A stretch of 64,000 bases of DNA from Octopus bimaculoides (taxonomy: Eukaryota): assembly GCF_001194135.2 (NCBI RefSeq), contig NC_068987.1:24236581-24300580 (forward strand), given 5' to 3'. The notes below the pieces were generated by a model that saw only the letters and a program-made list of their open reading frames with translations, ran no database searches and was not told the DNA's origin. Below, one piece after another: positions 2,736 through 57,873 of this stretch. The stretch's first letter is position 1; every line of letters begins with the position of its first letter. The translations under genes were made by a program, and so were the position numbers.

Positions 2736-2841
2736 TTTCTTAGATACCAATTCAATTAATAAACATTAAAAGCTGATTGAGCAACTACTTTTAAACTAAG
2801 TGTATAGTTGGATGAAATGGTGATTGTAATGGAACAAAATA

Positions 2842-3732
2842 TAGGTGGGCAGGGCAATAAGGAATATTTACTGCATTTTTGATTTTAAGAAAAAAGAATT
2901 TTTTACAAATGTTCGTTACCTTACAAAAACTGTATCAGCTAAGCAAATGTCATTCTCTATATGCATTAAAAAAATTTTCATAAAATTATCGCCATTCTCT
3001 TTGAGCTTATAAAAGACAAATTCAGCTGGGACAAAATGAATAAGCCAAGATAAGTCAAATTTGCGTCTTCAGTTTTCCAGAATAACATTTGTAAAACGAT
3101 TTATATATGTCAATATTCTTAAACATCAGAAAGATCAGAAATGCTGCAAAATTTTAAAATATTTAAGTCATGAAACTGGATCATGGAAAAATGGTACCTG
3201 ATATGGAATTAACAAAACTTGACTAAATCTAAAAGTTCAACATAAGATATTCTCTATAACTTCACAATCTGCTTGAGTGGCTCTCTTCCCAATACATTTA
3301 CACATCAGGAAATTAAAGAAAATAAATTATTGAAATTAGTCATCACTCATTTTGCTCCATTTTAGACATCATCTTTTGAAAATTATTAAATTAAACATTA
3401 GTGTAGAAAAAATTGATTTGGAATCCAACAGAGAAAAGAATATTGATTGTTAGGCACCAAAAATTATCCAAGTATTTTATTAGGAACCTCAATTACAACT
3501 GGCTCAAATTTGAGGAAAAATTTCTTGAAAAAAAAAGTACCTGACTTTGTTTCAAATTCTCAACTTCAGCAACAACTATGCTGACCAGTTTTTACTCCCA
3601 AGGATAATGCAACAGTACAAAATGATGATGCAATACTTGCAATGTAATGGTTTCAAACAGGTAAGGGGAAAATAACGAGAAATCAGAAATTACGCATTTT
3701 ACCCCAGTTACCAATCTTGCCCACAACCACCG
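2842..3732 (+). mobile_element. Non-autonomous DNA-transposon-like repeat (GGGGCAAAATGAGTAA-motif family), copy 1
   Basis: Collinear with 53450-54555 (+) and partly with 39110-39432 (-); internal and terminal ggg(a/g)caaaatga motifs shared with the pogo-like relics at 40290-41120. Confidence 0.7.
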
Positions 3733-3869
3733 CAATTAAGAATGAAGTGAAGATGATTTAGAACATAAAAATAAATCGGAACCCGAGCATGGCCTCAGAC
3801 TCTGGCCAAAAGAATCATAGTTCAGTTTTAATTTAAAAGTGAGAAAGATATAATAAAAGTCTTCAAGCT

Positions 3870-4460
3870 GATTCATCATCATCTGGTCAAGCTTGCTTGG
3901 ACATTTTTAACCCATGCACACCATCTATCTTGGTCCTGCATTAGTTGAGGAAGGCATTCAGTGTCGCTGGTGAGTTGATCTACATACATTGTATTCAGAC
4001 CAACTCAAGTACGATCAGCACCTGTTTAGCTCACTAGCAATGACCTGCAAAGTACAAGCAGATCTCCATACAGCTGTTTATTGGCGAGATGTGTTCCCCA
4101 AGATATGTTTAAGACTGCTCTTAATATTTGGGTGTAAGTTCCATCTAACTTGGATGCCAGTTTCTCAATAAGCATCGGGCTGTTGCTCCATATAAAAGGA
4201 CTGAGTCTACTATTTATTGGAAAAAATTCCTCCTAAAGTTGTCTGACACGGTTGATTTTTCAGATAACATCCAGTTTGTTTAAGGTCAACCATGCTTTGG
4301 CTGTCCATGTTTTTACATCCTCTTCAGTTGAGGCTTTCTCAGAACGGATGTGCATGAAATCATCAACTTGACTGATAGTATCTCTGCTGCTTTTGGTGAT
4401 GGATCCTTGTTGAACAGTGCCTTAAACACTGAGTCTTACAATACTTTTGAAGGAGTGAAC
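3870..4460 (-). mobile_element. RTE-clade LINE, 3' fragment
   Basis: Minus-strand frames give QVDDF...KAWLTLNKLD, VDSVLLYGA, KLDGTYTQILRAVLNISW...LYGDL, ending in a (gat)n tail. Confidence 0.75.
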
Positions 4461-4950
4461 AGTGACCACAAAATTTCGTCCTGTCTCACATACAACTGGT
4501 CAGTTTTAACGAACAACAGTGACCATAAAATTTCATCTTGACTTGCATATGACTAGTCAGTTTTAACAAACAACAGAGAAATCTGCAATCAATACACCAT
4601 AGCAGTTAGAAACAGATTTGAGCTACTACAAAATGAAATTAAAGAAAACCCCTACAACACAGCATACAATAATTTTGTAATGTGTCACACAGAAGTTGCA
4701 AAAAAAAAAAAAGGCCATCAGACTAAGAACTAACAAACGACTTCCCTAGGATGACCTAGAGAAAGCACCTCCAAGCTAACAAGCACAATACTGATGAGAA
4801 ACCTCAATACTTTTAGTCTATGCTGCTAACATTATTTATATATCTAACTCTTGCTAACAATATAAGTAGCATACTCTGCTTAGGCATTAGAAACCACGAA
4901 AGAAAAGAAACAAGGACTTATAGAAAACCTGCAACTAAGAGATAAATTTG
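4458..4950 (+). mobile_element. RTE-clade LINE, endonuclease-RT linker fragment
   Basis: NWSVLTNNREICNQYTIAVRNRFELLQNE...YNNFVMCHTEVA, typical of the RTE inter-domain linker; begins with a 57-bp tandem duplication. Confidence 0.6.
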
Positions 4951-5820
4951 TTTGTCAGATCTGAATTGAGCATAGCTGATTTAATTAGAAATAGTGGTCC
5001 ACTTGTGTATACCAGAAAAAGTTATTCGCTGCATAACAAATTCGGTGTTGAAATTTTTATTTAGTTAACTGTAGAATTACTTCCCCTGACAATTTTCTTA
5101 ATTCCATATTCCGTTCACTTGCTGCAGTTGTTTGATGTAAATTGATATTCTTTTGTCAGTTTTAGTAGACTAAAACTGCTACATAGTTGGATCAAACTAA
5201 ATATAGTTGATTGGTATTTAACTGAGTATGGTTTCTTTATTACGTTGAGCCAAAAATGGAAATCAAGTTTTGTTGTAGAATCCTGAAGCTGTTATTGTTC
5301 ACTTAGCACTTAGGTTGTTAATGCTTAAGCAAATGTAACATCTTCCATATGAAGTCTATATTAATATTTATACCCATCAATATTGTTGACATGTCATTTC
5401 TCATGCGTCTGTTTGCTTTGATATTGCTTATAATTAAAATAAAAGAAAGAAGCTGAAAGAACACAAAATGAATTTTACGAAACTAATTGTTATGACATCA
5501 CACGAGATTCTCGTGGACCAAGGTTGCCGTTATCCTCTCCTACTTTATTAATTCTGCACTTCATAACAAAACATGAAAGTTCATAGAAAATAAAGAAAAA
5601 AGCAGAAATTGCAGTGAATTGATTTTGTGTTGAGGTATGAAATGTCTAATGTCTCGAATATTCGTCTTACTTCGTATAGAAAGAATATAGAGGCTAATAC
5701 CACGATCACAGGCAGACAAGGCAAACTGCTACGCTTAGGAATTTTTATGGATTAACTTTTGCCAACACAGACCACTACCACCAACAGCACCATTCCCTTG
5801 GATTTAAGATCTTAGCTTCT

Positions 5821-5836
5821 CATAAAATATGGCGGA
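5821..5836 (+). promoter_or_regulatory. YY1-type motif (AANATGGCG), candidate TSS-proximal element of the transposase/ZNF unit
   Basis: aaatatggcggac in a locally CpG-richer stretch, followed by a possible donor aaa|gtgaga near 5889. Confidence 0.35.
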
Positions 5837-6017
5837 CATTGGGAATTGAACCCCTCCTCTCTGACAAAACTTATTGCTTCTCGTTAAAGTGAGAGCGTTT
5901 CGTTATTTTTGTTAGATAATACATTTTTCTTAGTAAAATGAAAAATTAGTATTAATTTGCTTTCTTCATATATGTATGTATATATATGTGTGTGTATATA
6001 TATATAGAGAGAGACGC

Positions 6018-6140
6018 TTATTATAATCACGGATTATATTATCAAAGGTTATTGTCATCAAAATCAAACTTTTCTAAATACTTTATTTAATGTCAAGTAA
6101 AGAGTTATTCACTTATTGCTCTAGAGATTGTTATCAAAAT
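6018..6140 (+). repeat. Sub-terminal repeats of the pogo element's left end (TTAT(T/A)(G/A/T)TNATCA)
   Basis: ttattataatca (6018), ttatattatca (6034), ttattgtcatca (6049), attgttatca (~6127); no mirror set found to the right of the ORF. Confidence 0.45.
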
Positions 6141-6258
6141 TTTCAGTTAATCTGTTTTCGTTGACATTTGTCAGAGGCCAAACAAAGTTGTGATATTGAT
6201 ATTTATTTATATTGTTTCCTAATTAAATAAAGTGAGCATAGGCGACTATTAAAACATC

Positions 6259-7800
6259 ATGATGAAAGAGGTAAATAAGAAACGTAAAGATTTGTCTTTA
6301 CAAGAAAAACTAAACATATTGGGGTGTTATGATAAGTTACCCAAAATGAGCCAGCGCAGTGCTGCTGTTTACTTGAATATTTCCCAACCACTTTTGTGTA
6401 AGATTTTAAAAAACAGATCTAGTATTGAAAAATTAGCACTTTCTAATGAGAACATAGATCGTAAGAGAGTACGGTCTGGCAAAGATAGTCAAATTGAGTC
6501 AGCATTGAAAATTTGGTTTGGCAATGTTCGTGAAAAGAATACAACAATTAATGGCCCGCTAATGCGCCAAAAGGCAGAAGAGTTTGCAAAAGAAATGGGT
6601 AAAACAAATTTCACACCAACTGAAGGTTGGTTTAACAGATGGAAAAGACGAGAGAATATTGTATACAAGCGTGTTCATGGCGAGGGGAAAAGGGCTAATG
6701 TTTCATCAGCTGAAATGTGGATTAAGACAGAATGGCCAAAAATTATTGCTGAATATTCTCCGGAAGATATTTACAATGCAGACGAAACAGGGATTTATTT
6801 TCGAGCAATGCCGGAACATACTTATTCGTTAAAAAATGAAAATGCCAAAGGATTTAAATGTTCAAAAGAGCAAGTGACAGTTCTATGTTGCGCTAATATG
6901 AAAGGACAGAAACGAGAGCTTGTGGTTATTGGAAAAAGTAAAAATCCTGTGTGTTTTAAAGGTGTCAAAAGTTTACCTGTTCGTTACTGTTCAAATGCTA
7001 ATGCTTGGATGACTACAGATATTTTTAACAACTGGTTACTTATGTGGGATTTGGAATTAAAGCGAAAAATTGTACTGTTAGTTGACAATTGTTTGGCACA
7101 TAGAAATAATTTGTCATTAAAAAACATCAAATTAATTTTATTACCTTCAGATACTACATCATTAATTCAACCATGTGACCAAGGCATCACACGAGCTTTA
7201 AAAGCTTATTATCGTAGAGAAATTTGTATAAGAATTTTACCTGAAATTGATGATAGTCAAAGCCAGTCGGATGTAAATGCAATCGCAAAACAGATTTCCC
7301 TTCTTGATGTATTGCATATGCTAGCAATGTCATGGGACCAAGTATCAGTGAAGACTATTGAAAACTGTTTCAAAAAAAGTGGATTTTGTAAAGCAAACAC
7401 AGAAACCCTTGTTAACAATGAATTAGAACTTATTACAAATGAAATTCTTGACAGAAACCCAGATGACATGCAAAAAGAAGAGTTTGACTATTGGTTGGCT
7501 ATCGATGACAAAGTGGAATTGGAGGCTACAATGACAGTGTCAGAAATATGCCAGGCTGTTACAGATACAGATTCTAAATTAGAAGAGAATGAGCTAAATC
7601 CAGAAGAAGAAATTCCAGAGATTCCAACCAATGCTCAGATGCGAGAAGCTCTAAAAATACTTCGTCGTGGTGTGCAACATCGATCAGCAGAATTTCAAAA
7701 GCAGTATGAGTATGAGCGGTTTGTTAATGAACTACTAAATGTAAACAGTATGCACAATCAACAATGGGTAAGTTTTTTTTTTTCTTCTTTAAATAAATAA
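6259..7800 (+). CDS. pogo/Tigger-family (TIGD4/6-like) transposase, 513 aa: HTH_psq, CENP-B HTH and DDE_1 with an intact DD30D triad
   Basis: Uninterrupted ORF with EGWFNRWKRR, YNADETG (D1), LLVDNC (D2) and IQPCDQG (D3); 30 residues between D2 and D3. Confidence 0.95.
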   Translation: MMKEVNKKRKDLSLQEKLNILGCYDKLPKMSQRSAAVYLNISQPLLCKILKNRSSIEKLALSNENIDRKRVRSGKDSQIESALKIWFGNVREKNTTINGPLMRQKAEEFAKEMGKTNFTPTEGWFNRWKRRENIVYKRVHGEGKRANVSSAEMWIKTEWPKIIAEYSPEDIYNADETGIYFRAMPEHTYSLKNENAKGFKCSKEQVTVLCCANMKGQKRELVVIGKSKNPVCFKGVKSLPVRYCSNANAWMTTDIFNNWLLMWDLELKRKIVLLVDNCLAHRNNLSLKNIKLILLPSDTTSLIQPCDQGITRALKAYYRREICIRILPEIDDSQSQSDVNAIAKQISLLDVLHMLAMSWDQVSVKTIENCFKKSGFCKANTETLVNNELELITNEILDRNPDDMQKEEFDYWLAIDDKVELEATMTVSEICQAVTDTDSKLEENELNPEEEIPEIPTNAQMREALKILRRGVQHRSAEFQKQYEYERFVNELLNVNSMHNQQWVSFFFSSLNK

Positions 7801-7812
7801 TTGTTAATAATA

Positions 7813-8075
7813 AGTGGTGGGTGGGTGGTTAAGAAGTTTGCTTCCCAACTACATGGTTTCAAGTTCAACCCCACTACATGGCATCAAGTTCAACCCCACT
7901 ACATGGCATCTTGGGCAAATGTCTTCTGCTATAGCCTTGTGAGTAGATATGGTAGATAAAAACTGAAAGAAGTCCATCGTTTATACACACACATACATAT
8001 GTCCATGTGTATATGGGTCTCCTCTTCACATCACATGCTAGTTATAAATGTGTGTCACTCATTTGCTGTGAAAAC
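7813..8075 (+). mobile_element. tRNA/CORE-type SINE 5' part with an internal 24-25 bp duplication
   Basis: ggttaagaagtttgcttcccaactacatgg head; aagttcaaccccactacatggcatc present twice; ttgggcaaatgtcttctgctatagcc core. Confidence 0.8.
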
Positions 8076-8084
8076 ATTCTTTTA

Positions 8085-8492
8085 CTTTTTTCAGTCATTT
8101 GACTGTAGCCATGCTGGAGCACCACCTTTGGTCAAACAAATCAACCCCCAGGACTTATTCTTTGTAAGCCTAGTACTTATTCTATTGGTCTTTTTTGACA
8201 AACCACTAAGTTACAGGGACATAAACACACCAACATTGGTTGTCAAGTGATAGTGGGGGAACAAATACAGACAGACAAACATATTTATCAGGCTGTTGCT
8301 GATGCAGATTCTAAATTAGAAGAGAATGAACTGAAGAAATTCCAACCAATGCTCAGGTGCCAAATCCACTCACAAGGCTTTGGTTGGCCTGAGGCTATAG
8401 TAGAAGACACTTGCCCAAGGTGCCACAGATAAGACTGAACCTGGAACCATGTGGTTGAAAAGCAAGCTTCTTACCATACAGCCATGCCTGTG
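8085..8492 (-). mobile_element. tRNA/CORE-type SINE interrupted by a 72-nt transposase fragment
   Basis: 3' half at 8085-8275 and 5' half at 8361-8492 are reverse complements of 8682-9010; 8289-8360 matches 7552-7642. Confidence 0.8.
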
Positions 8493-8681
8493 CTTATCTA
8501 CCATGTAGAAATATTATCTTGCTTGGAAACAAGTGAGGATTGGCAACAGGAAGGGCATTCAACTGTAGAAAATTTGCTTCCACAAACACTGTCCAACCCA
8601 TGGAAGAGTGGATAGTTAAACAATAATGTCAGTTTCCAATTCATTTAAATAATAATTTGAAGTTAATTAATTTCATATCCT

Positions 8682-9010
8682 GGCATGGGTGTGTGGTAAG
8701 AAGCTTGCTTCCCATTCACATGGTTCCGGGTTCAGTCCCATTGTGTGGTTCCTTGAGTGTGATGTCAACCAAAGCCTTGTGAGTGGATTATGTATGTATA
8801 TTTATGTGTTTTTGTCTTTGTGTTTGTCTTCCCACCATCGCTTGACAACCGATGTCAGTGTGTTTACGTCCCAATAACTGAGTGGTTTGGCAAAGAAACT
8901 GATAGAATAAGTACTAGGCTTACAAAGAATAACTCCTAGGGTTGATTTCTTTCACTAAAACCCTTTAAGGCAGTGCTCCAGCATGGCTACTGTCAACTGA
9001 CTGAAACGAG
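8682..9010 (+). mobile_element. tRNA/CORE-type SINE, near full length
   Basis: A-box/B-box-like head (gtgtggtaagaagcttgcttccc...ccgggttcagtccca), (TG) spacer, ccaccatcgcttgacaaccgatg...ggtgctccagcatgg 3' part. Confidence 0.85.
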
Positions 9011-9914
9011 GAAGTTCTCATTACTTTTATCCTCTGCTGCAGAGGTTGAGTTTTGTGATGTCTGCCTAAAACATGGTGTCAGAAAGGGATGAATATTTCA
9101 TGCATATATAGACAAATTGTTGAGATAGAAGATTAATAGTAACTTTATAGCAAGCTATCAGAGTATGAGAATCTTGTGGTACTTTGATGTCATAACATCA
9201 TTTTTACTTAAAGTTAAGATAGAGGCTTTTATAAATCTTTACAAAAAGTAATGCCTAAGTTTTGTTACAAACACAGAGTCTTGTATTTCTATTGAACTTA
9301 TCTATGCAATAATGCAGGTTATGAAATTCTTGTAATTCTTTGTGTTGTATTCTGTTATATCTTTGTATTGAAATGTGTTTCATTTTTTTTACTGTCTCTT
9401 AATTTTAGTGTGTCTGGTATTACTGAAGTGATCATTTCTCACGCAAGTTACATCAACAGATCCATGAAGAATCCAAAAAAATTGAAGAACTGATTTAATA
9501 ATGAAGACATCACAGTGGTTATCTAAGTTAATGAAAGTGATTTGAAATAAATCTCCTGAGTGATATTGCAATGGAAACACTTGAAAAAGCCATTATTATA
9601 TAATGTGTTACATATCTGGATATATTTTGATAAGTGGAGCAAATGCAGTTATGTTTGAATTGATTAGCTTTAATTACAAAATTAAAATCTGAGGGAATAA
9701 ATTTATCCCTTAATATATTTGAAAATATTTATTTATACTTGAGACATAACTACAAATATTTTCAAATATTCATTATTTGAAGAGAAAATAGACTGTATTA
9801 TAATCTGTAAGTTTTGATCTCATGATCTTGTGCTCAATAGTCTAGCACATTAATCGCAGTGTCATTTGCCTTATAAAACATTATATTTGTGTTCTATGAA
9901 CAACAAATCACATT

Positions 9915-11090
9915 ATGGAGGAGAGGCTGCACGAGAATCAGGTTTATAAGGAAACACAAAGGGAAAATAATGAAATTTCCTTACCAAACTGAGGAAGACG
10001 AAGAGAAGAAATTATATGTCTGTGATATCAAGGGAAAGACATTTAGAAAATGTAAGGACATCAATGAACTCAAATCACTTCACACAAGTTCAAATATTTA
10101 CTTTTGTAAAGTTTGCTCTAAAGATTTCATTATAAATGGTTCTTTGTCAGTGCACAAATACACTTACATAACTAAGAAACCACAGCACTATTAACTGCAG
10201 TAAGGCATACTCTTGGAGTGATTATTTGACAAGTCACAAACATATTCACACAGGTAAGAAAGCATACTGTTGTATTTGTGGTTAAACATTTTCCTCAATG
10301 TTTACTCAAGTGAGAAATCTTGTCTGTGCTATGTGGTAAAACATTCTTTCTTAATTGTGAATGTTCATGGGTGTAAGTCATACAGATGTGAAATTATACC
10401 ACTGTTCTTTATAAAAAAAAAAAACTCTGGTTAAGATCACTTGACAAGTCACAACATACACATACAGATGAGAAACAGTATCACTGATATCTGGTATAAA
10501 ATTCTCTCAATAATACCTGACTGATTGCAAATGTACTCGTGCAAGGGAGAAACCATACTATTGTAATGTCTATTATAAAATATTCATTTGTAGCAGTGAA
10601 TTGATTATTCACAAACATAATCACACAGCTGAGAAACCATGTCACTATGATATATGTGGAAAAAATATTCCTTCAGAAATCTTAACTCCCCATATAAATA
10701 TTGATACAGACAAGAAAATGTACCTTTGTGATATCTTTTAGATATTCTGGTCTAACTCCTCATACATGTGAGAAACCTTACCACTGTGATGTCTATAGAG
10801 AAAATTTTTAGACATATCTATAGTCTCACTCATTTATGTTAGGAACTGAACCATTGTGATGTTCATGGTAAAACATTCTCTTATATTAGAAATATAAACT
10901 AGTCACAAACAAATCTCCTCAGATAAGAAATCATAGCCTTGAATTCTGTAGTCAAACATTCTTTAAGAATGCTTACCCAACTCATATACAGATTAGTACG
11001 TTAAATAAACCAAACCATTGTGCTGTCTTTTATAAAACATTATCTCAAAATACTGATTTAATTGGTCACAATTTACTCAAGAAACTGAAA
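9915..11090 (+). pseudogene. Decayed C2H2-ZNF array, paralog of the 61008 gene
   Basis: Starts atggaggagaggctgcacgagaatcaggtttat (MEERLHENQVY vs MEERLCKNQVY at 61008); many frameshifted or stop-containing finger relics ([19 protein letters not shown], gagaaaccatactattgt). Confidence 0.88.
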
Positions 11091-11490
11091 ACTGTTATTA
11101 CAATAATAAATCAAGCTACAGTAGGATGGTCATGGTGAGAGTTCACTGGAGCTTTTGGCTTACTTCAAGAAATGGATGAATGTTGTATTTATAGAGTTTC
11201 ATTGTGAAATATTACCATTTTGTTTCAGAATCGTTTCCCATATTTATGATTTTTATATAAAAATTTTTATTTACACCTTTAATATTTAGCATCCATTATT
11301 CTCTGCATTAGTCTTTATTGCATGAAACATTTGTGGTTCAAAAACTCTGAAAATATCCATATACAGATCACAAACCATTTTTTTACTATTGTAATATTTA
11401 CATTTTCCCAATGGTTTAAATTTTTATAGAAGTCAGAAGCAGCAATTCATTTTTACAACCTTCATTTCAGAATATGTGTATGTATGTATG

Positions 11491-11530
<40 letters not shown>

Positions 11531-11539
11531 TACATATAC

Positions 11540-11583
<44 letters not shown>

Positions 11584-15108: not shown

Positions 15109-16081
15109 AAGAAATTAGTCGTGGTTCGCCATTATTGATTAATCTATCTCGGAAATTCTTGACGATAACTTATAGAACCTGGCTATTTCGTTGAACAGCT
15201 CAGTGGTAAGTGGACTGGTTTCATCCTCACTTGGCAAAACTTCTCTGTGTATGAGTACATTCGATAACTTTTGTTTTCACCCTATATTGATATATAAGTA
15301 TTAAAAATATCGACCTATGCAGTCAATATTTTTTCGAAAATAAAGCTACAGTTTAGTCTGCAGGTGTTTAGTTCCAGGTCAGAATTGGTCTGGCAGACCT
15401 ATTCTAAAAGTTGTTCCGGCTGTGATCACCCCTACCAAATTTTCATGTAGAACGTGCTGTCTCTAGTTTGACAGCCGAATGTAGGTGATAATGACACATA
15501 AACATAGTGATTGGATATTTGCGAAGATTATGATTATTATCAGTAAACAGTATGTTCTGAAATTATGTATTTCATCAAAGATTTATTCTTCTTCGATTTG
15601 CTATAAATGACGATGATCGTGCGTTGGCTAAAAGTATTAAATCATTTGTTTACAATTATTGACACCAGTGTTACCCGTCACATCATGGGAGTATGCTTTT
15701 GCCACCTTTTTGTAGTAGTATCGAGAGATGGCATACATACATACAGTAACTATAACTTCATTTTTATGAAATTTCTTGATGCATATACAAAATGATGAAA
15801 TGAATTCTAATTTTCAGAAGAAAATTATTTAAACATCAGGCTGTTCAGAAAGTGAAAAAAAAGAAAAAAAAAAAAGTTGAAAGCGAAAAACAAAATTCTG
15901 TTTTGATTTTATATTATGAAGTTCTCTCTCACCTTGCATATATATTCCCTCTCATCCATTGTCTTTTATTCTTTCAGTATTTGTAGTGCTCATTTATATA
16001 TTGCTTGCTATGTTAACTGTCTTTTACTATCACTTCCTCTCTATATAAACAGTGTAAACGAACCAACATTCATGGCATAAC

Positions 16082-16435
16082 TACAGATTTCTGTCCACCC
16101 CCACCCGCGGACTTTAGATGATCATAACTTTCAGAAAAATGGATATTTTTGTTTATGAAATTTTCTACGAATATGTGTTATATCATGTATATTCCGAATA
16201 TACAACTTGTTTTGGGGGTGGGGTTGGAATTTCGGAAATTCACCGGAGTCCACTTCAATTCGTCTTAACTTTCGGGAAAATGGATATTTTTAAATGAAAT
16301 TCTCTACAAATATACCTCGGACTATGTAGATTCCGAGGACATAGGAATTTTGGGGGAAAACAATTAGAGGTTATTTTTGAGAACCGTTCCCCAGTCGGAG
16401 GTGTTTCGGAACAAGTCGTCCATGTTTGTTTCATT
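16082..16435 (-). mobile_element. Interspersed repeat with internal subrepeats (possibly Helitron-derived)
   Basis: Reverse complement of 57290-57680; related copy at 27180-27450. Confidence 0.55.
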
Positions 16436-17499
16436 TTGTTTTCTACGTTTGTGCATCCGTAGATTTCAACATACACACACACACACTTGTAATTAAAAAA
16501 GTTAAAACGGGGAATTATTTCATTCACTATCATGTGTATTATAGAGATTATGTAACAAATTACACTTGTGCGTGTATATTCTTTATTTTTGCTTCTGGTG
16601 TCTTCTGCCTTTCTATTAGAAACGTTTACCTGGGAATTTACTTAAAGTGAAAAAAAAAATCGTATGCCACAGATAAGTCGTCTTAGTAACATATTTCTGT
16701 GTATCAGACATTTAACTGTTATTTTTAGCTTAACGAGTTTTCTGGTGAGGGCTTCATTTGCCTTCATTGCCTGTTTAATCTGGCATGGTACACACTCTGA
16801 CATTGTTGTATTTTACAAATGCAGAGTTCCCACAAAGTTGTGTGAAGTCATGTTAATAAGAAATTAGAAATTAAAGTTGAAATATTCAGGTAAATGTTTA
16901 TATTTATAGTTTGTTAATATAGAAATGTAACAAAGTTTGTATTGTTTCTAACACTGTTTCTTTATTATTTCAGCTGACATTGGCATAAAATGATTCTCTC
17001 CTTCATATAAATCACCAATGTTTGTCATACTTTTTAAAGATGTTATACAGAACTGATAAAACTTTGTTTGTATAAATCTATGGTGGAATTACCGTGAAAT
17101 AATTCCTTTGACCTGATATTATTAATAATATTTCTCTACTTTCTGGAATAAATACAAGATAATTTTGCATTCTAATTAAACTTGGACAAATTTACCACAG
17201 AGACATAACTGGCTTCTCTTGACAGAAATTTCATGTATATCTAGGTAACTGGATCTATTTTAGTGTTACCATACGCATTGATTTCTTACTACAAGACAGA
17301 CTTCTGTAATAAAACAGTCTTGGAATACTTGCACAGAAATGATTTCTTATGATAAATCACCATGTAAGTAACCATTAGTTGCATCTTCAGACATCATCAA
17401 AGATCAGAGTTGATGGAAATAAAGTTCAAGAAATGTTTGTTGAAATATAAAGCCTAACACAAGAAAAGTATTTGTATATTGTGGTAAGAGAAGAAAATT

Positions 17500-18702
17500 A
17501 TGGAAAATGAATTATGTGACAACCAGGATGAATATAAAATACAGTCAAGGACTGATTTTCCTGATAAGACACTGAAACAAATAGAAAAGTCATCAAAACA
17601 CTGTGATGTTTCTAAGCTATTATCTGAAAAAGGTACCTTAACTAAACATAAACCTATTCATGCTGGAGGGAAACCATATCACTGTGATATCTGTGGTAAA
17701 TCATTTTCTCAGAAGGGTTCCTTAACTACACACAACCGTATTCATACAGGAGAGAAGCCATATGACTGTGATATCTGTAGTAAATCATTCTCTACAAAAG
17801 TTCACCTAGCTACTCACATACGCATTCATACAGGAGTGAAACCATATCACTGTGATACCTGTGATAAATCATTCTCTCAAAGCAGTTATTTAACTACTCA
17901 TAAACGTATTCATACAGGAGAGAAGCCATATCACTGTGATATCTGTGGAAAATCATTTTCTCGCAATGGCAAATTATCTACTCACAAACGTATTCATACA
18001 GGAGAGAAGCCATATGACTGTAATATCTGTGGTAAAACATTTTCTAGAAGTGATTATTTAACTACTCATAAACATATTCATACAGGAAAGAAGCCTTATG
18101 ACTGCGATGGCTGTGATAAATCATTCTTTCGATATAGTGAATTGACTACTCACAAACGTATTCATACAGGAGAGAAGCCATATCACTGTGATATCTGTGG
18201 TAAATCATTCTCTCGAAGTGATCACTTAACTACTCACAAACATATTCATACAAGAGAGAGGCCATATCATTGTGATATCTGTGGTAAATCATTCTCTGTA
18301 GATAGTCACTTAACTACTCACAAACGCATTCATGCAGGGGAGAAGCCATATCAATGTGACATCTGTGGTAAATCTTTCTCTCAAACAAATATCTTAACAA
18401 CTCACAAACGTATTCATACAGGAGAGAAGCCATATCTCTGTGATGTATGTGGCAAATCATTCTCTGTACCATGTAGTTTAACTAAACACAAACGTATCCA
18501 TACAGGAGAGAGACCATATCACTGCAGTATCTGTGGTAAATCATTCTCCATAGATAGTCACTTGACAACTCACAAACGCATTCATACTGGAGAGAAACCA
18601 TATCACTGTGATATCTGTGGTAAATCATTCTCTCGAAGTAGCTATTTGAATACTCACAAGCGTGTTCATACAGAAAAGAAGCCAGATGACTCTGATATAT
18701 AA
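17500..18702 (+). CDS. C2H2 zinc-finger protein, 400 aa; 12 intact fingers plus one degenerate N-terminal finger
   Basis: ATG-initiated ORF with tandem [11 protein letters not shown]...H-x3-H TGEKP units. Confidence 0.95.
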
Positions 18703-20229
18703 AGTAAATAATTCTCTTTTAATGGTGACAACCATTTGGAAACACATTCACATATTTGTTGCTGGGTTTAGCATCACAATTTGGCTGTTGTGTTATTTTA
18801 GTGAAGACTACTGTGTTTGCATTCAGAACAGGTGTTATTTTCATTTGAGTGAACTATGAAAAGTCTGTCCTATAAGAGAGAAGCTATATCCCTGTTGAAA
18901 ATACTTCTCTCTAAAATGTTGAGTTAATGAGATACAAGCATTCATACAAGAAAAAAAGCTGTCACTCTCACCTGCATTAAATCATTCTCATAAAATTATA
19001 TAGCCATATTTTCATATTACAACAAATATGTCTATATTGGTGATGTTAAAACTTATCAGTGTGATATTTCTAATAAATACTTGCTTTCAAAATGCTCATC
19101 TACATATATATATATATATATACATTTTAGAAATGCCTAGAAAGGAGAAAAGATACTCTTGGTTTATTTGAAATTGAGAGTAAATAATATGGAAATGTAT
19201 TTACTGATTAACATTACAGTATGTTTTAAGTAAAATACACAAGCCTTAATAAAATGCACTTCATCATAGGATAATATGTATTAGAACTTATATTCTAGTT
19301 CTTTTTATACAGTCAGGTCTTACTACCTATTCTGATAAAATAAATTTAAAGTATATGCCTTTAAGAAACTGATTTTGTTTGGAAAATCCATGTAATTTAT
19401 CATTTCTCTGATGCTTAAGCAAATGTTAATTTGCATGTATCAAGGTCTATGATACAGCAGATCATCACTCTGAATTGACTTCTGACACCTCATCTGTAAC
19501 GCCCTGCACCCTGAGATCTGACTGCATCACTCTATTGTTTATATGTGATTGTTTTAAATAAAGAAACTAAATCTCTTTATGAAGATGTAAATATTTCTAT
19601 CTGAAAAATGTATGATGAAGATAAATTTTAGATTAAATTCTTTTTAATCTCCTAACTTATGAACGCAATAACTGCATTACTCTGCTGTTACTTAACAATA
19701 CTGTTGCATATACTATTGATAGTATACATCATTCTATGCACACACATTCATGCAGGAGAGAAGCTATACACTTGTGGTATCTTGTTTTCTAAGCTGTAAA
19801 TTAAACAAACATCAACACATTCAGGAAGAGAAGCAATATCTCTGAAATATCTATTGTGTATCATATCCTGAAACTGGTAACTTCATGAGACAGGAGAGGA
19901 GCTGTATTTCTATAACATCTTTGGACATATTCACAACTATGTTCATATTGAAGTAAAGTATATGTAACAGGATTCAGCACATATTATATGTAAACCACTA
20001 CTGCATTGGTAATTTCTAAAAATACTGTCCACACATGTGCATTATCTTCCTAAACACCTTACCCCCAATAATTCACTGAATCTAGGAATAGACCTGAAAA
20101 GCATCTTTCAACGAAGTCATGACATCCTTGTCACTTTGACAACACACCAACTTGTTTACTAGACTTATCAATAAAACATGTTATACCATATAGTTTGTAG
20201 TCGCGAATAACAAATCCCTCAGTTGTTAC

Positions 20230-20760
20230 ACTTGTTAGGTTTTGCAATCTTTGGTGCCATTATATTGTATTTCCACATATATAACATTAATAAACTATCA
20301 CAAATACTAGGATTCTTGTTTAGAATCAGGAGATTAACAACCTCAATTGTTAAATCTATACAAAGCTCAAATAAGACAAACCATGGAGCAGTGTGTATAT
20401 CTATGGGATGGCACTGATGATATTAATACATTTGCATCCTTGAGCAAATTCAAAAGAAAGTAATTTAACTGATTCAATCACAAAGAAGCTTCAACCACTA
20501 TCTCATGGAAACAATTTGTTCTCTCTCTGTTGTTACTGCAGTGGTATCTCCTCTGAAATATCTGAACATGTTCCCTCTTACAATTACCTCTCTGCCCATG
20601 TTTTTCCCAATGAATCTTCAAACTGAAAATCAAAATATCAACCCTACCGATCTCACCGGTCTGGAAGGACTTACGAAGATCAGTAACTGACAAAAGCATC
20701 AACAAATAGATAACTTACCACTGGTGAAGCACTCTTAAAATATTTATTTTCTCTCTTAAC
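20230..20760 (+). mobile_element. Jockey/CR1-like LINE, RT C-terminal relic
   Basis: Frameshifted LYKAQIRQTMEQCVYLWDG...PLSHG...YCSGISSE, matching the LYKAQxRPxMEYCSHxWxG pattern. Confidence 0.55.
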
Positions 20761-21761
20761 ATCAGAAACATATTCTCACAACTTGATGATAGCATCACTG
20801 CACAGTTATATAAATAAATGTGTATACCTGTTTTCACTTCACTCTGCACCAGTTCTGATTGTTGATTGAAAATATTGAGTAAAACAATTATTGAAAAAAT
20901 ATTTCTTGGCTAAAAGCTATTGAAATAGATTAACCTCAGGAGTGTCATAAGATGTATTATCTATATTTATCTGAATGATAAAAAAACATTTTAAAACTAG
21001 AAAACTTCAGTTACACAAATATTATTTATATTTTTTTAACAAATCAAAGGATATAAACAGAAAAATGTTAAACTTATCAGCTGACAGCCATCCTCTTATA
21101 GGGAATGTACAACTGAAGTACATAAAACAATACAAAAGACATTAAACCCAGGAGGACTAATATCAGCTGATACAACCCTCCATACAATCTGCCTGTGACT
21201 AGAAATGTAACAAGCAACTTATTGTCATTGGTCAGCTAATGATTTTGCAGCAACAGAAGTACCACAATACCCCTGATAAAAGTGTGAAGATATACAGCTA
21301 TATAGATAATATACACTTCAAAATCTCACACAATAACAAAATGCTCAGAAATCTGAATATAATCACAAAACTTCACTCAATGGAAAATATCTGTTGAAGG
21401 TTATACATAAAACTAGTAAAAACAAGATAATATTAAGACAGCATATATACAGCTAACAGAAAACACTTGAAATATACTTGGCACATTTCTTCAAATCTAC
21501 AAACAACTTTATATTGCTGTTAAAAGTTGGAGGAATTAACAATATATCAACAACAATGTTGAAAACACTAGATCATATATCAATGCCGGTAAGAGGTGCA
21601 ACTGGTGAACCATTAAAAAATTCAATATAGTTATAACAAGAGTTATTTAGAGCATGTCCATTCTTAAAAAAACTTACAATAATGATGAGCTAACTTCCCT
21701 AAATATGCTGGATAATACTGGGAGGCAGTAGGAGATGCACTATATGCTGTGTGTTTTTACA

Positions 21762-21935
21762 ATCATCATCATTGTTTAATGTCCATGTTCCATGCTGGCA
21801 TGGGTTGGATAGTTTGACAGGATTCAGGGTGTCAAAGTACTGGATTGTGTTCCAGTGTTTGCTTTGGTATGGTTTCTATGGTTGGGTGTCCTTCCTAACA
21901 TTGACTTCACAATGTGCATTAGATACTTTTTGTTT
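21762..21935 (-). mobile_element. SINE/RTE 3' tail fragment
   Basis: catcatcattgtttaatgtcc...ccatgctggcatgggttgga, homologous to 44518-44680. Confidence 0.6.
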
Positions 21936-23911
21936 TTTTATCATGTTACCAACACTTGTGAGGTTACGTACAGCTTGCAAGACTACAAACCCCCAAGCTT
22001 TATGCTCCGTGATGAGAAGTTAAAATGTGAGAGAAGAGGTCAGAGCAGAATCTACAATCATTGTGGATGTAGTTATCTCTTATTCAATTATAAGAGGTAA
22101 CTATATAAGTAGGCATGAAGAAAAACATTATCAAAGCACATGATCTGATATGGCTAATGAAAATAATGTGATAACTCTGTTTAACTTCCAGCAGATGCTC
22201 CACCTTACTGGAGTCTTTCCAATAGTAAGGTTATTGCAAATTCCAGACAAATCTGAGTTCAACAGAAAAACAGATATAGCCTGTGAAACTGCAATGAACT
22301 GATAAATGTTATTGTATCTGGTGGTTGCAGGAGGGTTATCATACCAATGAATGTATGTAAATATATATTCATGTGAATCTTTATGTGTGTATGTTTAATG
22401 TTTAGGTTGTAACTGGTAAAAGGTTTGGGTTAGGCAGTATGTGGCAAGTTGAGAAAAAGTTGCATAGTCGATACATCGGAAAAAATTGATGCAACAAATA
22501 GTTCATACTTATCAGAGATTTTATTCACTGAGAATTTCACCATCATTTAAAGCTCTTTCTAACAATAAAAACAAAGGAAAACATCAAAGCCTACGGGCTG
22601 TCAGTATATTTTTAATCCTCGTCATTTGAAAATCTGATTATATAACAAACATATTACAAACAGCTGATGGTCATTAGACTATAGAAGGGAAGTAACTCTC
22701 TCTTTCTCAGATTATTTCGTAAGTGCAAATTACAGTTGTCTGAAGTGTGTCAAAATAATTAAATACGTGTAATATGATTTTGGTGGGTAAATTAGATAGT
22801 TAATCAAGTTAACAGAAAATTTCTTGTAGTGACTTCACAACAATGCACAATGTTTGAACATAATTTACTGTGTTGTGTTAGTATGAAAAGATGTTCATGT
22901 ATTTCAATTAATATATATATGTAACGGTTAATTTTTAATATTTGTAGCGATGCCTGTTATGGTGCAACGTCGAGATCGCCAGTTTGTAACGATAATAATT
23001 TGTTGTTATAATTGCATGTTATAAGATGCGAAAGATGAACAATGCATGAAGTTTTAAGGAAATATTTATTTACCGTTACATTACAAGACCTTGCCTCGAC
23101 GGGCAGGTTATAATATCTGAAAGCATGCGGTAGAATGCTTCTTTGCATAGTTTGGTGTATACGAATTGTTAGTAGTAAGCCACAAATAGCGATAGAATAT
23201 GTAAAAGAACAGAATTAGAGCCAGCGTGAGTTGTAGGGTATGGGACGTTGTCTCACAGTTGCTGACAGTAAACTTCATTTCTTCCTCTGGCCAAGGTTGT
23301 AGCTGGTCAGCTAGACTTCGTTGTCACCATGTGACTGGACTCGTTGAGTTGTTACCGACTGGTGACTAAACTGGTTGAGTCGGCACTGACTGGTGACTAA
23401 ACTAACTTTTTGCTTGGGGTTTCCTTGCTTTTATAACGATCCAGAAGGATAGATATATCATTGAGAACAATAGATTTAGTTGGTGGTCTTGTTATCTCTA
23501 TTCTAGCTTTTGGTGAAGTAGAAGAGGTTAGAAAGGATCAAGTAGTGAAGACATTATTTCGGCCTAGCTAAAGGCATCTGGAAAATGTAAAACTGCTGTC
23601 AGAGAAAAACCATTGTTCCAACGTGGGAAAAGTTCTGTTGTAGTGTTAATTTAAATTTGGCTATGGTGGATTGAATCCACCTCATNNNNNNNNNNNNNNN
23701 NNNNNNNNNNNNNNNNNNNNNNNNNNNNNNNNNNNNNNNNNNNNNNNNNNNNNNNNNNNNNNNNNNNNNNNNNNNNNNNNNNNNNNNNNNNNNNNNNNNN
23801 NNNNNNNNNNNNNNNNNNNNNNNNNNNNNNNNNNNNNNNNNNNNNNNNNNNNNNNNNNNNNNNNNNNNNNNNNNNNNNNNNNNNNNNNNNNNNNNNNNNN
23901 NNNNNNNNNNN

Positions 23912-24172
23912 AAAGCTCCACGAGGCTCCGGCGGGGGATGGTGGCGAACCCTGCTGTACTCTTTCACCACAACTTTCTCTCTCTCTCACTCTTACTTCCT
24001 GTTTCTGTTGTGCCTGTAATTCAAAGGGTCAGCCTTGTCACGCTGAATATCGCTGAGAACTACGTTAAGGGTACACGTGTCTGTGGAGCGCTCAACCACT
24101 TGCACGTTAATTTCACGAGCAGGCTGTTCCATTGATTGGATCAACTGAAACCCGCGACGGAGTGCCAACAAC
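23912..24172 (+). mobile_element. SINE 3' part, third family
   Basis: gagaactacgttaagggtacacgtgtctgtggag...cacgagcaggctgttcc...acggagtgccaacaac; recognised octopus repeat, family not assigned. Confidence 0.5.
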
Positions 24173-24569
24173 ATATGAGCAGTATGGTGAAAATAGCATA
24201 ATATGGCATGTAAGGAAAATGTCTATTCAAGGTGTAACACTTGGGGTGGTTTTGACATATTAAATCTTCAGATGCTGTCATGTCTTCAATATCCTCGACT
24301 GTATAGGCAGCCATTAAACAGCTATATACACTGAATTTGACGAGAGTTGGGAATGTCATACCGGCTCTGACGTCTATGGTACTCTGCGAAATTGGCGCTT
24401 AAATTGACTGTATTTATAGGCCTTGCTCCTGGAAAGTTCCAGAAGAGCTACCAAACTGTCACGTGAACAACAGCCATTCATTGGATAAAATCTGTTGCAC
24501 ACATGAGCAAAATATGATTGAATTGTGATTTGAAATTCGTATCTGGCAAAACGCGATCAAATCCAAAGC

Positions 24570-26095: not shown

Positions 26096-26099
26096 AAGA

Positions 26100-26315
26100 A
26101 AATTCCTTTCTGCTATAAGAACAAAGCCTGAAATCTGGAGGAGGGAGTAGTCGATTACATTGACCCAGTACTAAACTGGTACTTAATTTATCGACCCTGA
26201 AAGGATGAACGGCAAAGTTGACCTCGGTGGAATTTGAACTCAGAACATAGCAATGGGCAAAATACCACTAAGCATTTCATCCAGCATGCTAGCGATTCTG
26301 CCAGATCACGGCCTT
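26100..26315 (-). mobile_element. Deu/Nin-domain-like SINE
   Basis: ggtacttaatttatcgaccctgaaaggatgaacggcaaagttgacctcgg resembles the Deu/Nin core; related + copies at 56585-56864 and 57700-57830. Confidence 0.6.
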
Positions 26316-26369
26316 CAATAATAATAATAATAATGAAATTATTGTGTATAGTTGCCAGTACATAGGATT

Positions 26370-39109: not shown

Positions 39110-39432
39110 GGAAAGGTGATTAGGTAAGTGAGGCAAAATGAGTAAATTCTGACTTCTTTTCTCCTTACCTGTTTGAACCTATTGCATTGCAGCATCATTT
39201 TGCACTGTTGCATCATCTTCAGAAGTAAAAATTGGTCAGCATAGTTGTTATTGAAGTTGAGAGAGCTTGAAACATAGTCAGCTGACAGGTGCATTTTTTT
39301 CAAGAAATTTTTCTTCAGCTTTGACCTGATTGTAATTAAAATTGCTAATAAAATATCTGGATAATTTTTGACGTTTAACAATCAACATTCATTTGTCTTT
39401 TGGATGCCAAATCAATTTTTTCCCACGCTAAT
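39110..39432 (-). mobile_element. Partial copy of the 2842-3732 repeat
   Basis: Reverse complement matches 3400-3720. Confidence 0.7.
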
Positions 39433-57680: not shown

Positions 57681-57873
57681 ATGCCGAATCCACTAGTACC
57701 CTCCCCAACAATTTCGGACCTTGTATCAATAGTAAAAAAGATCATTATCGTTAGGCGGCGAGCTGGACTAAGTGCTTAGCAGTATTTCGCCCGTCGCTAC
57801 GTTCTGAGGTCGACTTTACCTTTTCAGACTTACTTTTGTACTTCACTATAAAATATTTTTTTTAAATATTAGA

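Follow-up and report, generated by a model that had tools for sequence, protein, structure and literature searches.

This analysis of a 64-kb stretch of Octopus bimaculoides DNA, referred to here as the window, revealed an ORF for a 513-aa pogo transposase at window positions 6259-7800 (+). In a Pfam search, the ORF matched PF03184 (DDE_1) at 2.8e-41 over the whole profile and PF03221 (HTH_Tnp_Tc5) at 4.7e-14, while its residues 7-132 matched the CENP-B DNA-binding domain 1HLV (E=2.5e-11). The first HTH alone gave only a weak match to HTH_23; a bipartite N-terminal DNA-binding domain of the CENP-B_N/psq plus HTH_Tnp_Tc5 type is present. The three catalytic Asp (DD30D) claimed in the original prediction were found at D175, D276 and D307 upon alignment with the conserved columns of 16 relatives. 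The last two are separated by 30 residues, which lies inside the range of 29-59 that serves as the pogo criterion (PMC7386202), and all three are invariant in the four octopods compared. The AlphaFold model of the catalytic core showed a pLDDT of 80-94, and its best PDB matches were the Mos1 and SETMAR transposases and the CENP-B DNA-binding domain. Clustering at 90% protein identity or more yielded one protein per species, and the closest other database protein in a protein search was only 67% identical.

The pogo DNA starts with a left TIR near 6006-6033. The outer tip of this TIR (6006-6015, +) reads TAGAGAGAGA, a (GA)n run after (TA)n, where the aligned relatives L011 and L010 read TA-CAGTAGWAK. 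The (GA)n state is common to all four octopods, and the tip consensus has no match anywhere in the window. The inner left TIR (CGCTTATTATAATCACGG), followed by subterminal repeats of the TGTTATCAA type, is retained at 6015-6064 (+), the sole TIR-consensus match in the window. Positions 6014-6064 match the left TIR region of the TIR-bounded L011 (137-188) at 42 of 51 positions, with a Smith-Waterman score of 55; shuffled sequences scored 21.6±2.8, and 0 of 500 reached 55. A second subterminal repeat unit (TTCACTTATTGC...TTGTTATCAAAAT; 6104-6140, +) aligns with an internal TIR-like repeat of L011 (228-268), and a 13-mer of this unit recurs at 6052. The left subterminal repeats proposed at 6018-6140 are real by this homology to L011, although the two 13-mers alone would have been insufficient. 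L011 and L010 are autonomous pogo loci with the same protein architecture as the octopus ORF (57% aa identity) and a homologous left TIR with TGTTATCAA repeats, and one of the two elements occurs on 15 contigs. They have both TIRs, TA-CAGT(A/G)G...C(T/C)ACTG-TA, with TA duplications, whereas the octopus copy lacks the tip and the right end, and searches of the window with the element's own left end and with the relatives' right ends gave no right TIR. Of the two TIRs and flanking TA target-site duplication by which a mobile element is recognized, only the inner left TIR survives. Because the outer ~10 nt of the left TIR have been replaced by (GA)n and the right end is undetectable, the element is immobile and cannot be excised, as had been thought probable.

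Downstream of the ORF, the SINEs described earlier are present. A SINE head fragment (7813-7940, +), recognized by repeat matches within the window, starts 13 nt past the stop codon and lies at the same place in all four octopods. It is followed by a reverse SINE (8078-8490, -; body 8078-8284, head 8360-8490) and a full-length forward SINE (8682-9013, +). The microsatellite slot of the reverse SINE is filled by a patch of ~75-110 nt copied from the transposase ORF, at about 8259-8371 (8283-8357, similar to 7545-7640); apart from this small patch, no other transposase copy was found in the window.

With regard to the ZNF sequences further downstream, the strong acceptor at 9409 corresponds to the one that precedes the terminal exon of the neighbouring ZNF genes and is conserved across the family. 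In the intact paralog (60478-62930, +), the homologous terminal exon begins at 60478, with the ATG at 61008 following exactly 530 nt later, as had been stated, and the ZNF ORF (61008-62930) encodes 640 aa. The stretch corresponding to the leader of the paralogous terminal exons (9427-9914, +) makes up the remainder of the captured exon, as far as the start codon of the dead ZNF, and is a probable 3' UTR. It is 96.9% identical between O. bimaculoides and O. vulgaris, compared with a neutral 92.4% (p=2e-5). The dead C2H2 zinc-finger ORF (9915-11090, +) begins with a start codon homologous to that of the 61008 paralog and is frameshifted: homology to intact fingers is found in all three frames, each frame holds at least 15 stops, and no intact C2H2 motif was found in the array. 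Its identity between species, 94.0%, is near neutral, and its disabling stops are common to O. bimaculoides, O. sinensis and O. vulgaris. The decay of the finger array is thereby confirmed in three species, and the shared stops indicate that the array was dead before these species split, and nothing more; the idea that it decayed after the transposase had taken over the gene is unsupported. Nor is the array borne out as the 3' UTR, with polyA signals (AATAAA/ATTAAA) at 9546, 9681 and 9696 preceding it.

The splice that had been predicted between these two parts is exactly that of an annotated but uncharacterised gene. The donor TGG/GTAAGT (7767/7768) falls after codon 503 in phase 0, as claimed, and is conserved in four species. 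The first coding exon (6259-7767, +; codons 1-503) encodes the HTH domains, a DDE_1 core that contains D175/D276/D307, and a C-terminal region of acidic character. The intron of the annotated model (7768-9408, +; donor GTAAGT, acceptor ttttag) ends at the acceptor ttttag/TGTGTCTGGTATTACTGA (9408/9409), and the ZNF terminal exon encodes the final five codons and the stop (CVWYY; 9409-9426, +), which are 100% identical in three species. The RefSeq protein XP_014787158.1 of O. bimaculoides consists of ORF residues 1-503 plus CVWYY, with a CDS range equal to window 6259-9426, and the models XP_029638673.1 (O. sinensis) and CAI9725523.1 (O. vulgaris) likewise end in QQWCVWYY; the O. sinensis model uses the orthologous acceptor. 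The 9408/9409 site is real and family-conserved, but it is not the next acceptor-like site, as AGs with at least 13 of 16 pyrimidines occur earlier at 8094 (inside a SINE) and 9042. A 577-aa second isoform of O. vulgaris is spliced at the same acceptor as well, followed by the donor of an 8-nt micro-exon. This isoform gains a single degenerate finger whose C2H2 motif is broken, and one of its exons is orthologous to window 10594-10719. At the matching codon of the captured exon, two paralogous exons have a TAA stop (TGG TAA, TGA TAA), which would mean that a derived A>T change in the host locus removed a stop and added the two aromatic residues. The transcript appears to end within the terminal exon of a ZNF gene that is itself dead. 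Five codons, a stop and UTR are all that the host exon contributes, and the junction is best read as an end-capture of that exon rather than a domain fusion.

O. bimaculoides, O. sinensis and O. vulgaris carry the locus in a syntenic position, with the same flanking 424-aa and 400-aa ZNF genes and with flanks and SINEs that are ~93% identical. The insertion is likewise present at the orthologous site in a fourth octopod (SRA runs SRR11869385, SRR11869391 and SRR11869394), which shows the same immediate flanks and whose contigs break in the same upstream (GA)n and the same downstream SINE. The ORF is intact in all four octopods. Pairwise dN/dS values among the four orthologs, calculated by the Nei-Gojobori method, were 0.065 for O. 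bimaculoides-O. vulgaris, 0.115 for O. bimaculoides-O. sinensis and 0.126 for O. bimaculoides-fourth octopod (p<1e-8); all informative pairs fell within 0.065-0.147 (p<1e-8), far from 1. The dS of the ORF, 0.076, equals the flank mismatch rate of 7.6%. All three domains showed constraint, with an omega of 0-0.06 in the DNA-binding part, 0.03-0.12 in the core and about 0.2 at the C-terminal end. A single, in-frame indel was found in 1509 nt of the ORF, compared with 26 gap columns in the 232-nt leader. The private changes of O. sinensis (5 non-synonymous, 1 synonymous) are too few to be significant. An ORF that is intact in four octopods with a dN/dS of 0.07-0.13 reflects host-level purifying selection, which argues that the transposase gene has been domesticated in octopods, as originally proposed.

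Taken together, it is probable that the locus holds an immobile, domesticated pogo gene that pre-dates the divergence of the four octopods and is spliced into a ZNF terminal exon. A pogoR/Tigger-type pogo (DD30D) would have inserted on the + strand ~3.4 kb upstream of the terminal exon of a member of a C2H2 ZNF cluster, before the four sampled octopods diverged. The element would then have lost its excisability, as its outer left ~10 nt turned into (GA)n, its right end disappeared and SINEs settled 13 nt past the stop. Purifying selection in the host has kept the full reading frame, with both HTH domains, the RNase-H-like core with its three Asp and the C-terminal region. The GTAAGT donor, lying within the codons of a putative ancestral PCNA-box-like motif, would have been joined to the ZNF terminal-exon acceptor, and CVWYY and the stop would come from the ZNF exon, as would probably the 3' UTR and polyA site; the downstream ZNF ORF is a pseudogene.

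The gene may also have been domesticated with the unspliced 513-aa protein as its main product, the splice being minor or propagated by annotation and the ZNF gene uninvolved; we regard this as unlikely. The read-through tail (7768-7800, +) encodes VSFFFSSLNK and a stop, with a native AATAAA at 7792. The native stop and AATAAA just past the donor are conserved in four of four species, and an unspliced mRNA is therefore also plausible. Together with the preceding QQW, the tail gives QQWVSFFF, which fits the PIP-like consensus Q-x-x-[ILMV]-x-x-[FY]-[FY], a pattern that the KQxxIxxFF C-termini of relatives match as well, and a C-terminal PCNA-binding motif is documented for pogo (PMC4231638); from its sequence, QQWVSFFF is probably the ancestral C-terminal PIP-like box of the pogo ORF. 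Alternative isoforms were added to the O. vulgaris annotation by PASA from Iso-Seq and RNA-seq data, and the O. bimaculoides proteome served as protein evidence (PMC10700109). The O. vulgaris 508-aa model could be a projection from this proteome and thus not independent of the O. bimaculoides model, and the RefSeq model XP_014787158.1 may itself be partly ab initio; no independent fragments derived from transcripts turned up when a protein database was searched with the spliced C-terminus. Nevertheless, the splice is present in three annotations, the PASA-derived O. vulgaris isoform shares the acceptor, the GTAAGT donor is perfect in four species, and the captured exon at 9427-9914 is conserved above neutral. 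Furthermore, in the read-through tail of O. sinensis and O. vulgaris, QQWVSYFS, there is no second aromatic residue. Q1 and both aromatic positions of the PIP-like consensus are present in the spliced tail, QQWCVWYY, whose position 4 is a Cys. The donor splits the putative ancestral box after Q-Q-W, and the foreign exon would restore x-x-x-Y-Y.

The pogo element could also have landed in an active ZNF gene and be transcribed from the ZNF promoter and one or more 5' exons upstream of 6006, the array decaying only after the take-over; this we consider quite unlikely. The insertion does lie upstream of the ZNF terminal exon on the same strand. A 97-nt block (5063-5159) is collinear with 55202-55291 upstream of the 61008 paralog (74% identity), which suggests that the duplicated ZNF unit reached upstream of pogo, and 5401-5959 is conserved slightly above neutral (95%, p=0.008). 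However, the collinear block ends acceptor-like rather than donor-like, and no upstream ZNF exon or promoter was identified. As all examined array lesions are common to three species, the order of take-over and decay is unreadable from them. The proposal that upstream ZNF exons near 5800-5890 drive the gene is likewise unsupported, as pogo DNA starts at ~6006-6033 and is followed by pogo's own 5' leader (6016-6258, +; 243 nt), a candidate promoter and 5' UTR. The leader is 97.5% identical between O. bimaculoides and O. vulgaris, compared with a neutral 92.4% (p=7e-4); its identity to the fourth octopod, 85.6%, is near neutral. Since it has been kept and conserved above neutral, a promoter within pogo itself is no less likely: the leader is an equally good candidate as the ZNF promoter, and we infer that transcription starts from it. 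The surviving catalytic triad and partial left TIR would also fit an ordinary recently active or lucky transposon copy with an ORF open by chance, but this is very improbable. It is contradicted by an insertion at one site, next to one and the same SINE, in four taxa (dS up to 0.2) and by their low dN/dS (non-synonymous changes 8-15 times rarer than synonymous, p<1e-8), in addition to the nearly indel-free ORF next to an indel-rich leader, the missing TIR tip and right end, and a closest other database protein of only 67% identity.

The domesticated pogo gene resembles the vertebrate genes TIGD3/4/6, JRK/JRKL and TIGD2/5/7, in which a whole ~500-aa pogo ORF, comprising a DDE_1 core and HTH domains of the CENP-B and Tc5 types, is kept at a stationary single locus conserved across species. 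Its dN/dS of 0.07-0.13 falls in the same range as the Ka/Ks of 0.09-0.21 of vertebrate domesticated pogo genes (Gao et al. 2020, PMC7386202), and its DD30 spacing is that of TIGD6 (DD30N; PMC7386202). In contrast to the vertebrate genes, it represents an independent event in octopods, its C-terminus has been remodelled by splicing into a foreign exon, and its DDD triad is intact, whereas most vertebrate TIGDs lack at least one residue (PMC7386202). Orthology to TIGD6/TIGD4 was rejected, as the protein is ~39-40% identical to fish and coelacanth TIGD6/4 and transposon copies, including those of arthropods, are closer (57-67%); the TIGD-like name in RefSeq is an automatic similarity label. The product would bind DNA in a sequence-specific way, perhaps with a remaining nuclease activity, much like the pogo-derived vertebrate genes of the TIGD/JRK type.

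In the transposase captures that Cosby et al. reportedly described, the ORF of a DNA transposon is spliced with neighbouring host exons, with KZNF-type genes as frequent partners, and the host 5' exons are said to donate a protein domain that is spliced onto the transposase DNA-binding domain. The annotated octopus models likewise join a transposon ORF to a neighbouring ZNF exon, but in the opposite polarity: the start codon and nearly the whole protein come from the transposase, whereas the host exon adds 5 residues, a stop and UTR, and no functional host domain is fused.

The octopus gene also shares its pogo origin with CENP-B, S. pombe Abp1/Cbh1/Cbh2 and Drosophila CAG, in keeping with the match of residues 7-132 to the CENP-B DNA-binding domain. 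It differs from CENP-B, which lost the catalytic triad and gained a dimerisation domain, in keeping the triad, and from CAG, which has no DDE domain, in having DDE_1. In passages of Mukherjee & Moroz (2023, PMC10027918), 7 pogo-derived CENPB-type proteins are given for O. bimaculoides and a domestication event in the Octopus lineage is inferred; these passages hold no locus-level synteny, dN/dS, TIR state or splice structure. The gene described here may be among the 7, and its accession was not found in the supplementary files of that paper.

For both pogo and CAG, a PCNA link by way of the pogo C-terminus has been documented (Mateo & Gonzalez 2014, PMC4231638). It is conceivable, albeit decidedly speculative, that octopods have retained a pogo nuclease that is catalytically competent and tethered to PCNA, with a PCNA-box rebuilt out of a captured ZNF exon. 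If this rebuilding were adaptive, the protein would work at replication forks or in programmed DNA cleavage, and not merely in DNA binding. With this gene, a host-adopted transposase of octopods would join the known vertebrate cases.

This analysis revealed that the octopus pogo transposase gene is real and domesticated, and that it is already present in annotations, yet uncharacterised; the function of its protein is one that we infer. The window belongs to chromosome record CM046607.1 (GCA_001194135.2), with window position 6259 at record position 24,242,839. The predicted DD30D transposase was recovered as an ORF of 513 aa at 6259-7800 (+), with Pfam matches to HTH_Tnp_Tc5 (residues 77-137) and to full-length DDE_1 (residues 203-371, E=2.8e-41). 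Residues 7-132 matched the solved CENP-B DNA-binding domain (E=2.5e-11), and alignment with 16 relatives placed the catalytic triad at D175, D276 and D307, the last two 30 residues apart. AlphaFold predicts a core at residues ~171-375 with confidence (pLDDT 80-94), and the PDB structures closest to the model are the Mos1 mariner transposase, the SETMAR transposase domain and the CENP-B DNA-binding domain. After the octopus orthologs, the nearest relative in the protein database is only 67% identical. Within the 64-kb window, apart from the N-runs at 56865-57269 and 58351-59307, neither a second copy of the transposase nor a matching terminal inverted repeat (TIR) was found; because of these N-runs, a transposase in the matching interval of the 61008 paralog, an intact zinc-finger (ZNF) gene, can be excluded only partly. 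ORFs of 269-364 aa within 56620-59424 are artefacts of the same N-runs.

The proposed domestication was borne out by comparison with other octopods. In O. sinensis and O. vulgaris the locus carries the insertion at the orthologous site and is syntenic with O. bimaculoides, sharing a 424-aa ZNF gene ~7 kb upstream and a 400-aa ZNF (window 17500-18702) downstream; the alignment with both covers the whole of window 4675-9005, with its SINEs, at 93% identity. In three Logan contigs (SRA runs SRR11869385, SRR11869391 and SRR11869394) the ORF is 95% identical, and the contigs break in the shared (GA)n upstream and the shared SINE head downstream, which indicates that a fourth, more distant octopod carries the same insertion. 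Orthologs are thus found in at least three octopods and probably four, and the reading frame is uninterrupted in each of the four taxa. Over codons 1-503, Nei-Gojobori dN/dS was 0.065 between O. bimaculoides and O. vulgaris (dS 0.076), 0.115 with O. sinensis (dS 0.080) and 0.126 with the fourth octopod (dS 0.198), each pair departing from neutrality at p<1e-8; non-coding DNA around the gene mismatches at 7.6%, a rate equal to dS. Every part of the protein is constrained, with omega of 0-0.06 in the DNA-binding domain, 0.03-0.12 in the catalytic region, where the triad is invariant, and ~0.2 in the C-terminal third. Alignment with the fourth octopod shows a single in-frame codon indel across the 1509 nt of the ORF, compared with 26 gap columns in the 232-nt leader. 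Selection for transposition does not keep a copy fixed at a single orthologous site, and the selection observed on this fixed copy therefore acts at the level of the host.

The O. sinensis ORF (L004, the locus of this species, 10001-11539) shows five private non-synonymous changes and one synonymous change relative to O. vulgaris, a difference that is not significant; one of them is D>Y in the acidic C-terminal region. These changes could reflect assembly error or relaxed constraint. The annotation of the same locus also holds a 749-aa gene spanning its whole 25 kb (1-25342, -), and given this range the transposase gene and the adjoining ZNFs would sit inside its intron.

With regard to the ends of the element, two of the more distant relatives, loci L010 and L011, are complete elements with both TIRs and TA duplications. 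The ends of L011 (57% aa identity, 15 contigs) are TA|CAGTAGTATCCGTTTATTGTAATCACGG... on the left and ...GTGATCACAATAAGCGGCTTCTACTG|TA on the right, those of L010 are TA|CAGTGGACGCC...GGCATCCACTG|TA, and the TIR consensus is CAGTAGWAKCCGYTTATTRTRATCACGG. Window 6014-6064 aligns at 42 of 51 positions with the left TIR of L011 and the TGTTATCAA-type subterminal repeats of that element, with a Smith-Waterman score of 55 against 21.6±2.8 for shuffles, none of 500 of which equalled it. As this match lies far above the shuffles, the left sub-terminal repeats proposed from the sequence are genuine. All four octopods have TAGAGAGAGA/(GA)n in place of the outermost ~10 nt of the left TIR, with the CAG tip among the nucleotides replaced. 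The right end, reported as not visible, was likewise not found at 7798-11580: searches with the inverted left end (a 20-mer with <=3 mismatches, and Smith-Waterman against shuffles), with family consensus patterns and with right ends taken from the relatives gave only matches at chance level. One candidate right TIR at 7803-7817, with three mismatches, was rejected, being no better than shuffles and missing in the fourth octopod. The distance from stop codon to right TIR is 190-290 nt in complete relatives, and in the octopus copy a SINE follows after 13 nt. The octopus copy is an immobile, one-ended pogo.

TIRs came only from the P0009 and P0010 loci, which are more distant than P0002 (L007, L008 and L009; ERR3431203, SRR6517992 and ERR4030425), the closest non-octopus relative at 67% aa and 75% nt identity. 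No TIRs were seen in P0002, and its flanks were unalignable, so that it gave no guide to the ends. It has an intact ORF of 499 aa in three samples, with two catalytic Asp gone (D276S, D307N) and a FINELL-coding segment in tandem copies at its 3' end, and may represent a further pogo gene that was domesticated or inactivated. L010 (P0009) and L011-L016 (P0010) are TIR-bounded pogo elements with 57% aa identity to the octopus gene; as the 15 contigs are spread over many SRA runs of one project, one P0009/P0010 element is probably active, or recently so, in its host.

SINE sequence begins at 7813, at the predicted 13 nt past the stop codon, and three SINE pieces occupy most of 7813-9013. Rfam and tRNA scans of 5400-11300 returned nothing relevant, and the SINE label is therefore derived from repeat copies within the window. 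One reverse-oriented SINE carries, in its internal microsatellite slot, a patch of ~75-110 nt (8259-8371, core 8283-8357) that is 74-79% identical to ORF 7533-7642; the other copies of the SINE lack it, and O. sinensis and O. vulgaris share it. It resembles sequence copied from the adjoining ORF during repair, either as templated filler or by conversion. A second pogo copy was ruled out here, since the patch is confined to the microsatellite slot of one SINE copy.

The predicted splice into the ZNF terminal exon is sequence-perfect and has been adopted by three annotations. It joins the donor TGG|GTAAGT after codon 503 (7767/7768, +) to the acceptor ttttag|TGTGTCTGGTATTACTGA (9408/9409, +), and the product predicted from the sequence matches the O. 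bimaculoides protein XP_014787158.1 exactly: this protein consists of residues 1-503 of the window ORF followed by CVWYY, and its CDS range (3168 nt) is window 6259-9426. The 90%-identity protein cluster around the ORF comprises three 508-aa proteins, XP_014787158.1, XP_029638673.1 (O. sinensis) and CAI9725523.1 (O. vulgaris), and one longer isoform of 577 aa, CAI9725522.1 (O. vulgaris). The acceptor itself is as proposed; it is not strictly the next strong one, as acceptor-like sites lie at 8094, within a SINE, and at 9042.

The 577-aa isoform (L006, the O. vulgaris locus, 15329-27605; window ~9409-9416, 10594-10719, 15121-15332 and ~16970) shares the acceptor and leaves the exon 8 nt later (TGTGTCTG|GTATTA). 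It then enters one exon within the dead finger array that corresponds by orthology to window 10594-10719, followed by a further exon ~5 kb beyond, and terminates at an acceptor ~520 nt 5' of the start codon of the following ZNF gene. Read-through transcripts in this cluster seem to pass from the strong terminal-exon acceptor of one ZNF gene to that of the next. In the O. vulgaris annotation, PASA added alternative isoforms from Iso-Seq and RNA-seq assemblies (PMC10700109), and the 577-aa isoform is therefore indirect evidence from transcripts that the acceptor is used. The same annotation took O. bimaculoides proteins as protein evidence (PMC10700109), so that its 508-aa model is not independent. 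No transcript-derived fragments turned up when the spliced C-terminal 122 aa were searched against the database; the hits were all ~60%-identical pieces of other elements. The spliced mRNA is presumably the main product.

The homology of the acceptor to that of the 61008 paralog was confirmed. Window 9395-9689 is homologous to 60464-60786. In the paralog, 530 nt separate the exon start (60478) from the start codon of the intact 640-aa ZNF; in the host locus, 506 nt separate the exon start (9409) from the homologous dead start region at 9915. A third paralog, 5' of the 424-aa ZNF, has an identical type of acceptor block. This homology across paralogs identifies 9408/9409 as the terminal-exon acceptor of the ZNF family. 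The array at 9915-11090 is decayed as described: it matches intact fingers across three frames, with at least 15 stops per frame and no intact C2H2 motif. The early stops are identical in O. bimaculoides, O. sinensis and O. vulgaris, indicating that the array was dead before the three species split; decay after capture, as originally suggested, thus finds no support. Between O. bimaculoides and O. vulgaris, identity is 98.1% in the ORF (p 2e-23 against pooled neutral flanks), 97.5% in the pogo leader at 6016-6258 (p 7e-4), 96.9% in the captured exon at 9427-9914 (p 2e-5) and 94.0% in the dead array (p 0.02), with the pooled flanks at 92.4%. PolyA signals occur at 9546, 9681 and 9696, and the next one only at 11004. 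From this spacing the main 3' end may precede the array, in which case the dead array may lie outside the UTR.

A ZNF promoter driving the gene, also part of the original prediction, was not supported. Pogo DNA begins at ~6006, and the element has kept its own leader, which is conserved; an internal promoter is therefore at least as likely. In a comparison of the 5.5 kb 5' of pogo with the regions 5' of four paralogs, neither of two shared blocks pinpointed a conserved upstream ZNF exon or promoter. The first, a 97-nt block at 5063-5159 that ends in acceptor-like TTTTGTCAG, is collinear with 55202-55291, 5' of the 61008 paralog, at 74% identity, and is the sole sign of an upstream extension; it suggests that the duplicated ancestral ZNF unit would have reached at least 0.85 kb 5' of the pogo insertion point. 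The larger block at 2839-3714 is an interspersed repeat of ~0.9 kb, present three times in the window (2839-3714, 53437-54538 and, inverted, ~39119-39440 (-)). The stretch 2911-4675, in which the first copy lies, has no alignable counterpart at the orthologous loci of O. sinensis and O. vulgaris, and this copy is probably a lineage-specific insertion.

The new C-terminus may bear on a PCNA-binding motif. The relatives end in KQxxIxxFF, and in Drosophila pogo a PCNA-binding motif holds this C-terminal position (Warbrick et al. 1998, as cited in PMC4231638). The read-through tail of the octopus ORF, QQWVSFFF, conforms to Q-x-x-[ILMV]-x-x-[FY]-[FY]. The donor falls within the motif, directly after QQW, and joining to the captured exon gives QQWCVWYY, again with an aromatic pair at positions 7-8. 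The codons of the captured exon (window 9418-9420 region) are TGG TAT TAC TGA, and those of the paralogous exons are TGA TAA TAC TGA (60487-60489) and TGG TAA TAA (L004, ~1684-1686). As the codon matching the first Tyr is TAA in both paralogous exons, a derived A>T change at the host locus removed the stop and added YY. The rebuilt pair may be coincidental, resting as it does on one substitution and five codons. The PCNA-box hypothesis is testable, with peptide endings ...QQWVSFFFSSLNK, ...QQWCVWYY and ...QQWCVW; PIP-box peptide work is available (PMC4103810).

Locus-level studies of domesticated pogo transposases have mostly concerned vertebrates, fission yeast and insects. Octopus ZNF clusters are greatly expanded, and the capture locus sits in such clusters. 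For O. bimaculoides, a cephalopod survey lists seven pogo-derived CENPB-type proteins and infers domestication in the Octopus lineage (PMC10027918); this survey of TE-derived TFs gives gene counts rather than locus-level evidence, and the O. bimaculoides accession was not found in its supplements. The octopus gene is of the same kind as the vertebrate TIGD and JRK genes, and its dN/dS of 0.065-0.126 compares with 0.09-0.21 for vertebrate pogo-derived genes (PMC7386202). It nevertheless represents a domestication event separate from theirs, fish TIGD6 being only ~40% identical; as transposon copies are closer, the RefSeq name 'TIGD6-like' is a similarity label and not a statement of orthology. 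Transposase capture (Cosby et al., bioRxiv 10.1101/2020.05.07.082677) likewise involves splicing to a host gene, whereas the octopus gene has the opposite polarity and no fused host domain.

The standard criteria for domestication, namely synteny, lost element ends and strong purifying selection, are all cleanly in evidence at this locus. The practical value is modest, consisting of improved naming and gene structure for the LOC-level 'TIGD6-like' annotations. The polarity of the exon capture is unusual: the transposase retains its own start codon and body and would take only its 3' end from a dying ZNF gene. In contrast to most vertebrate TIGD genes, from which it has been lost, the full catalytic triad is kept in the octopus gene, which is therefore well suited to exploring whether DNA cleavage persists in a pogo-derived host protein.
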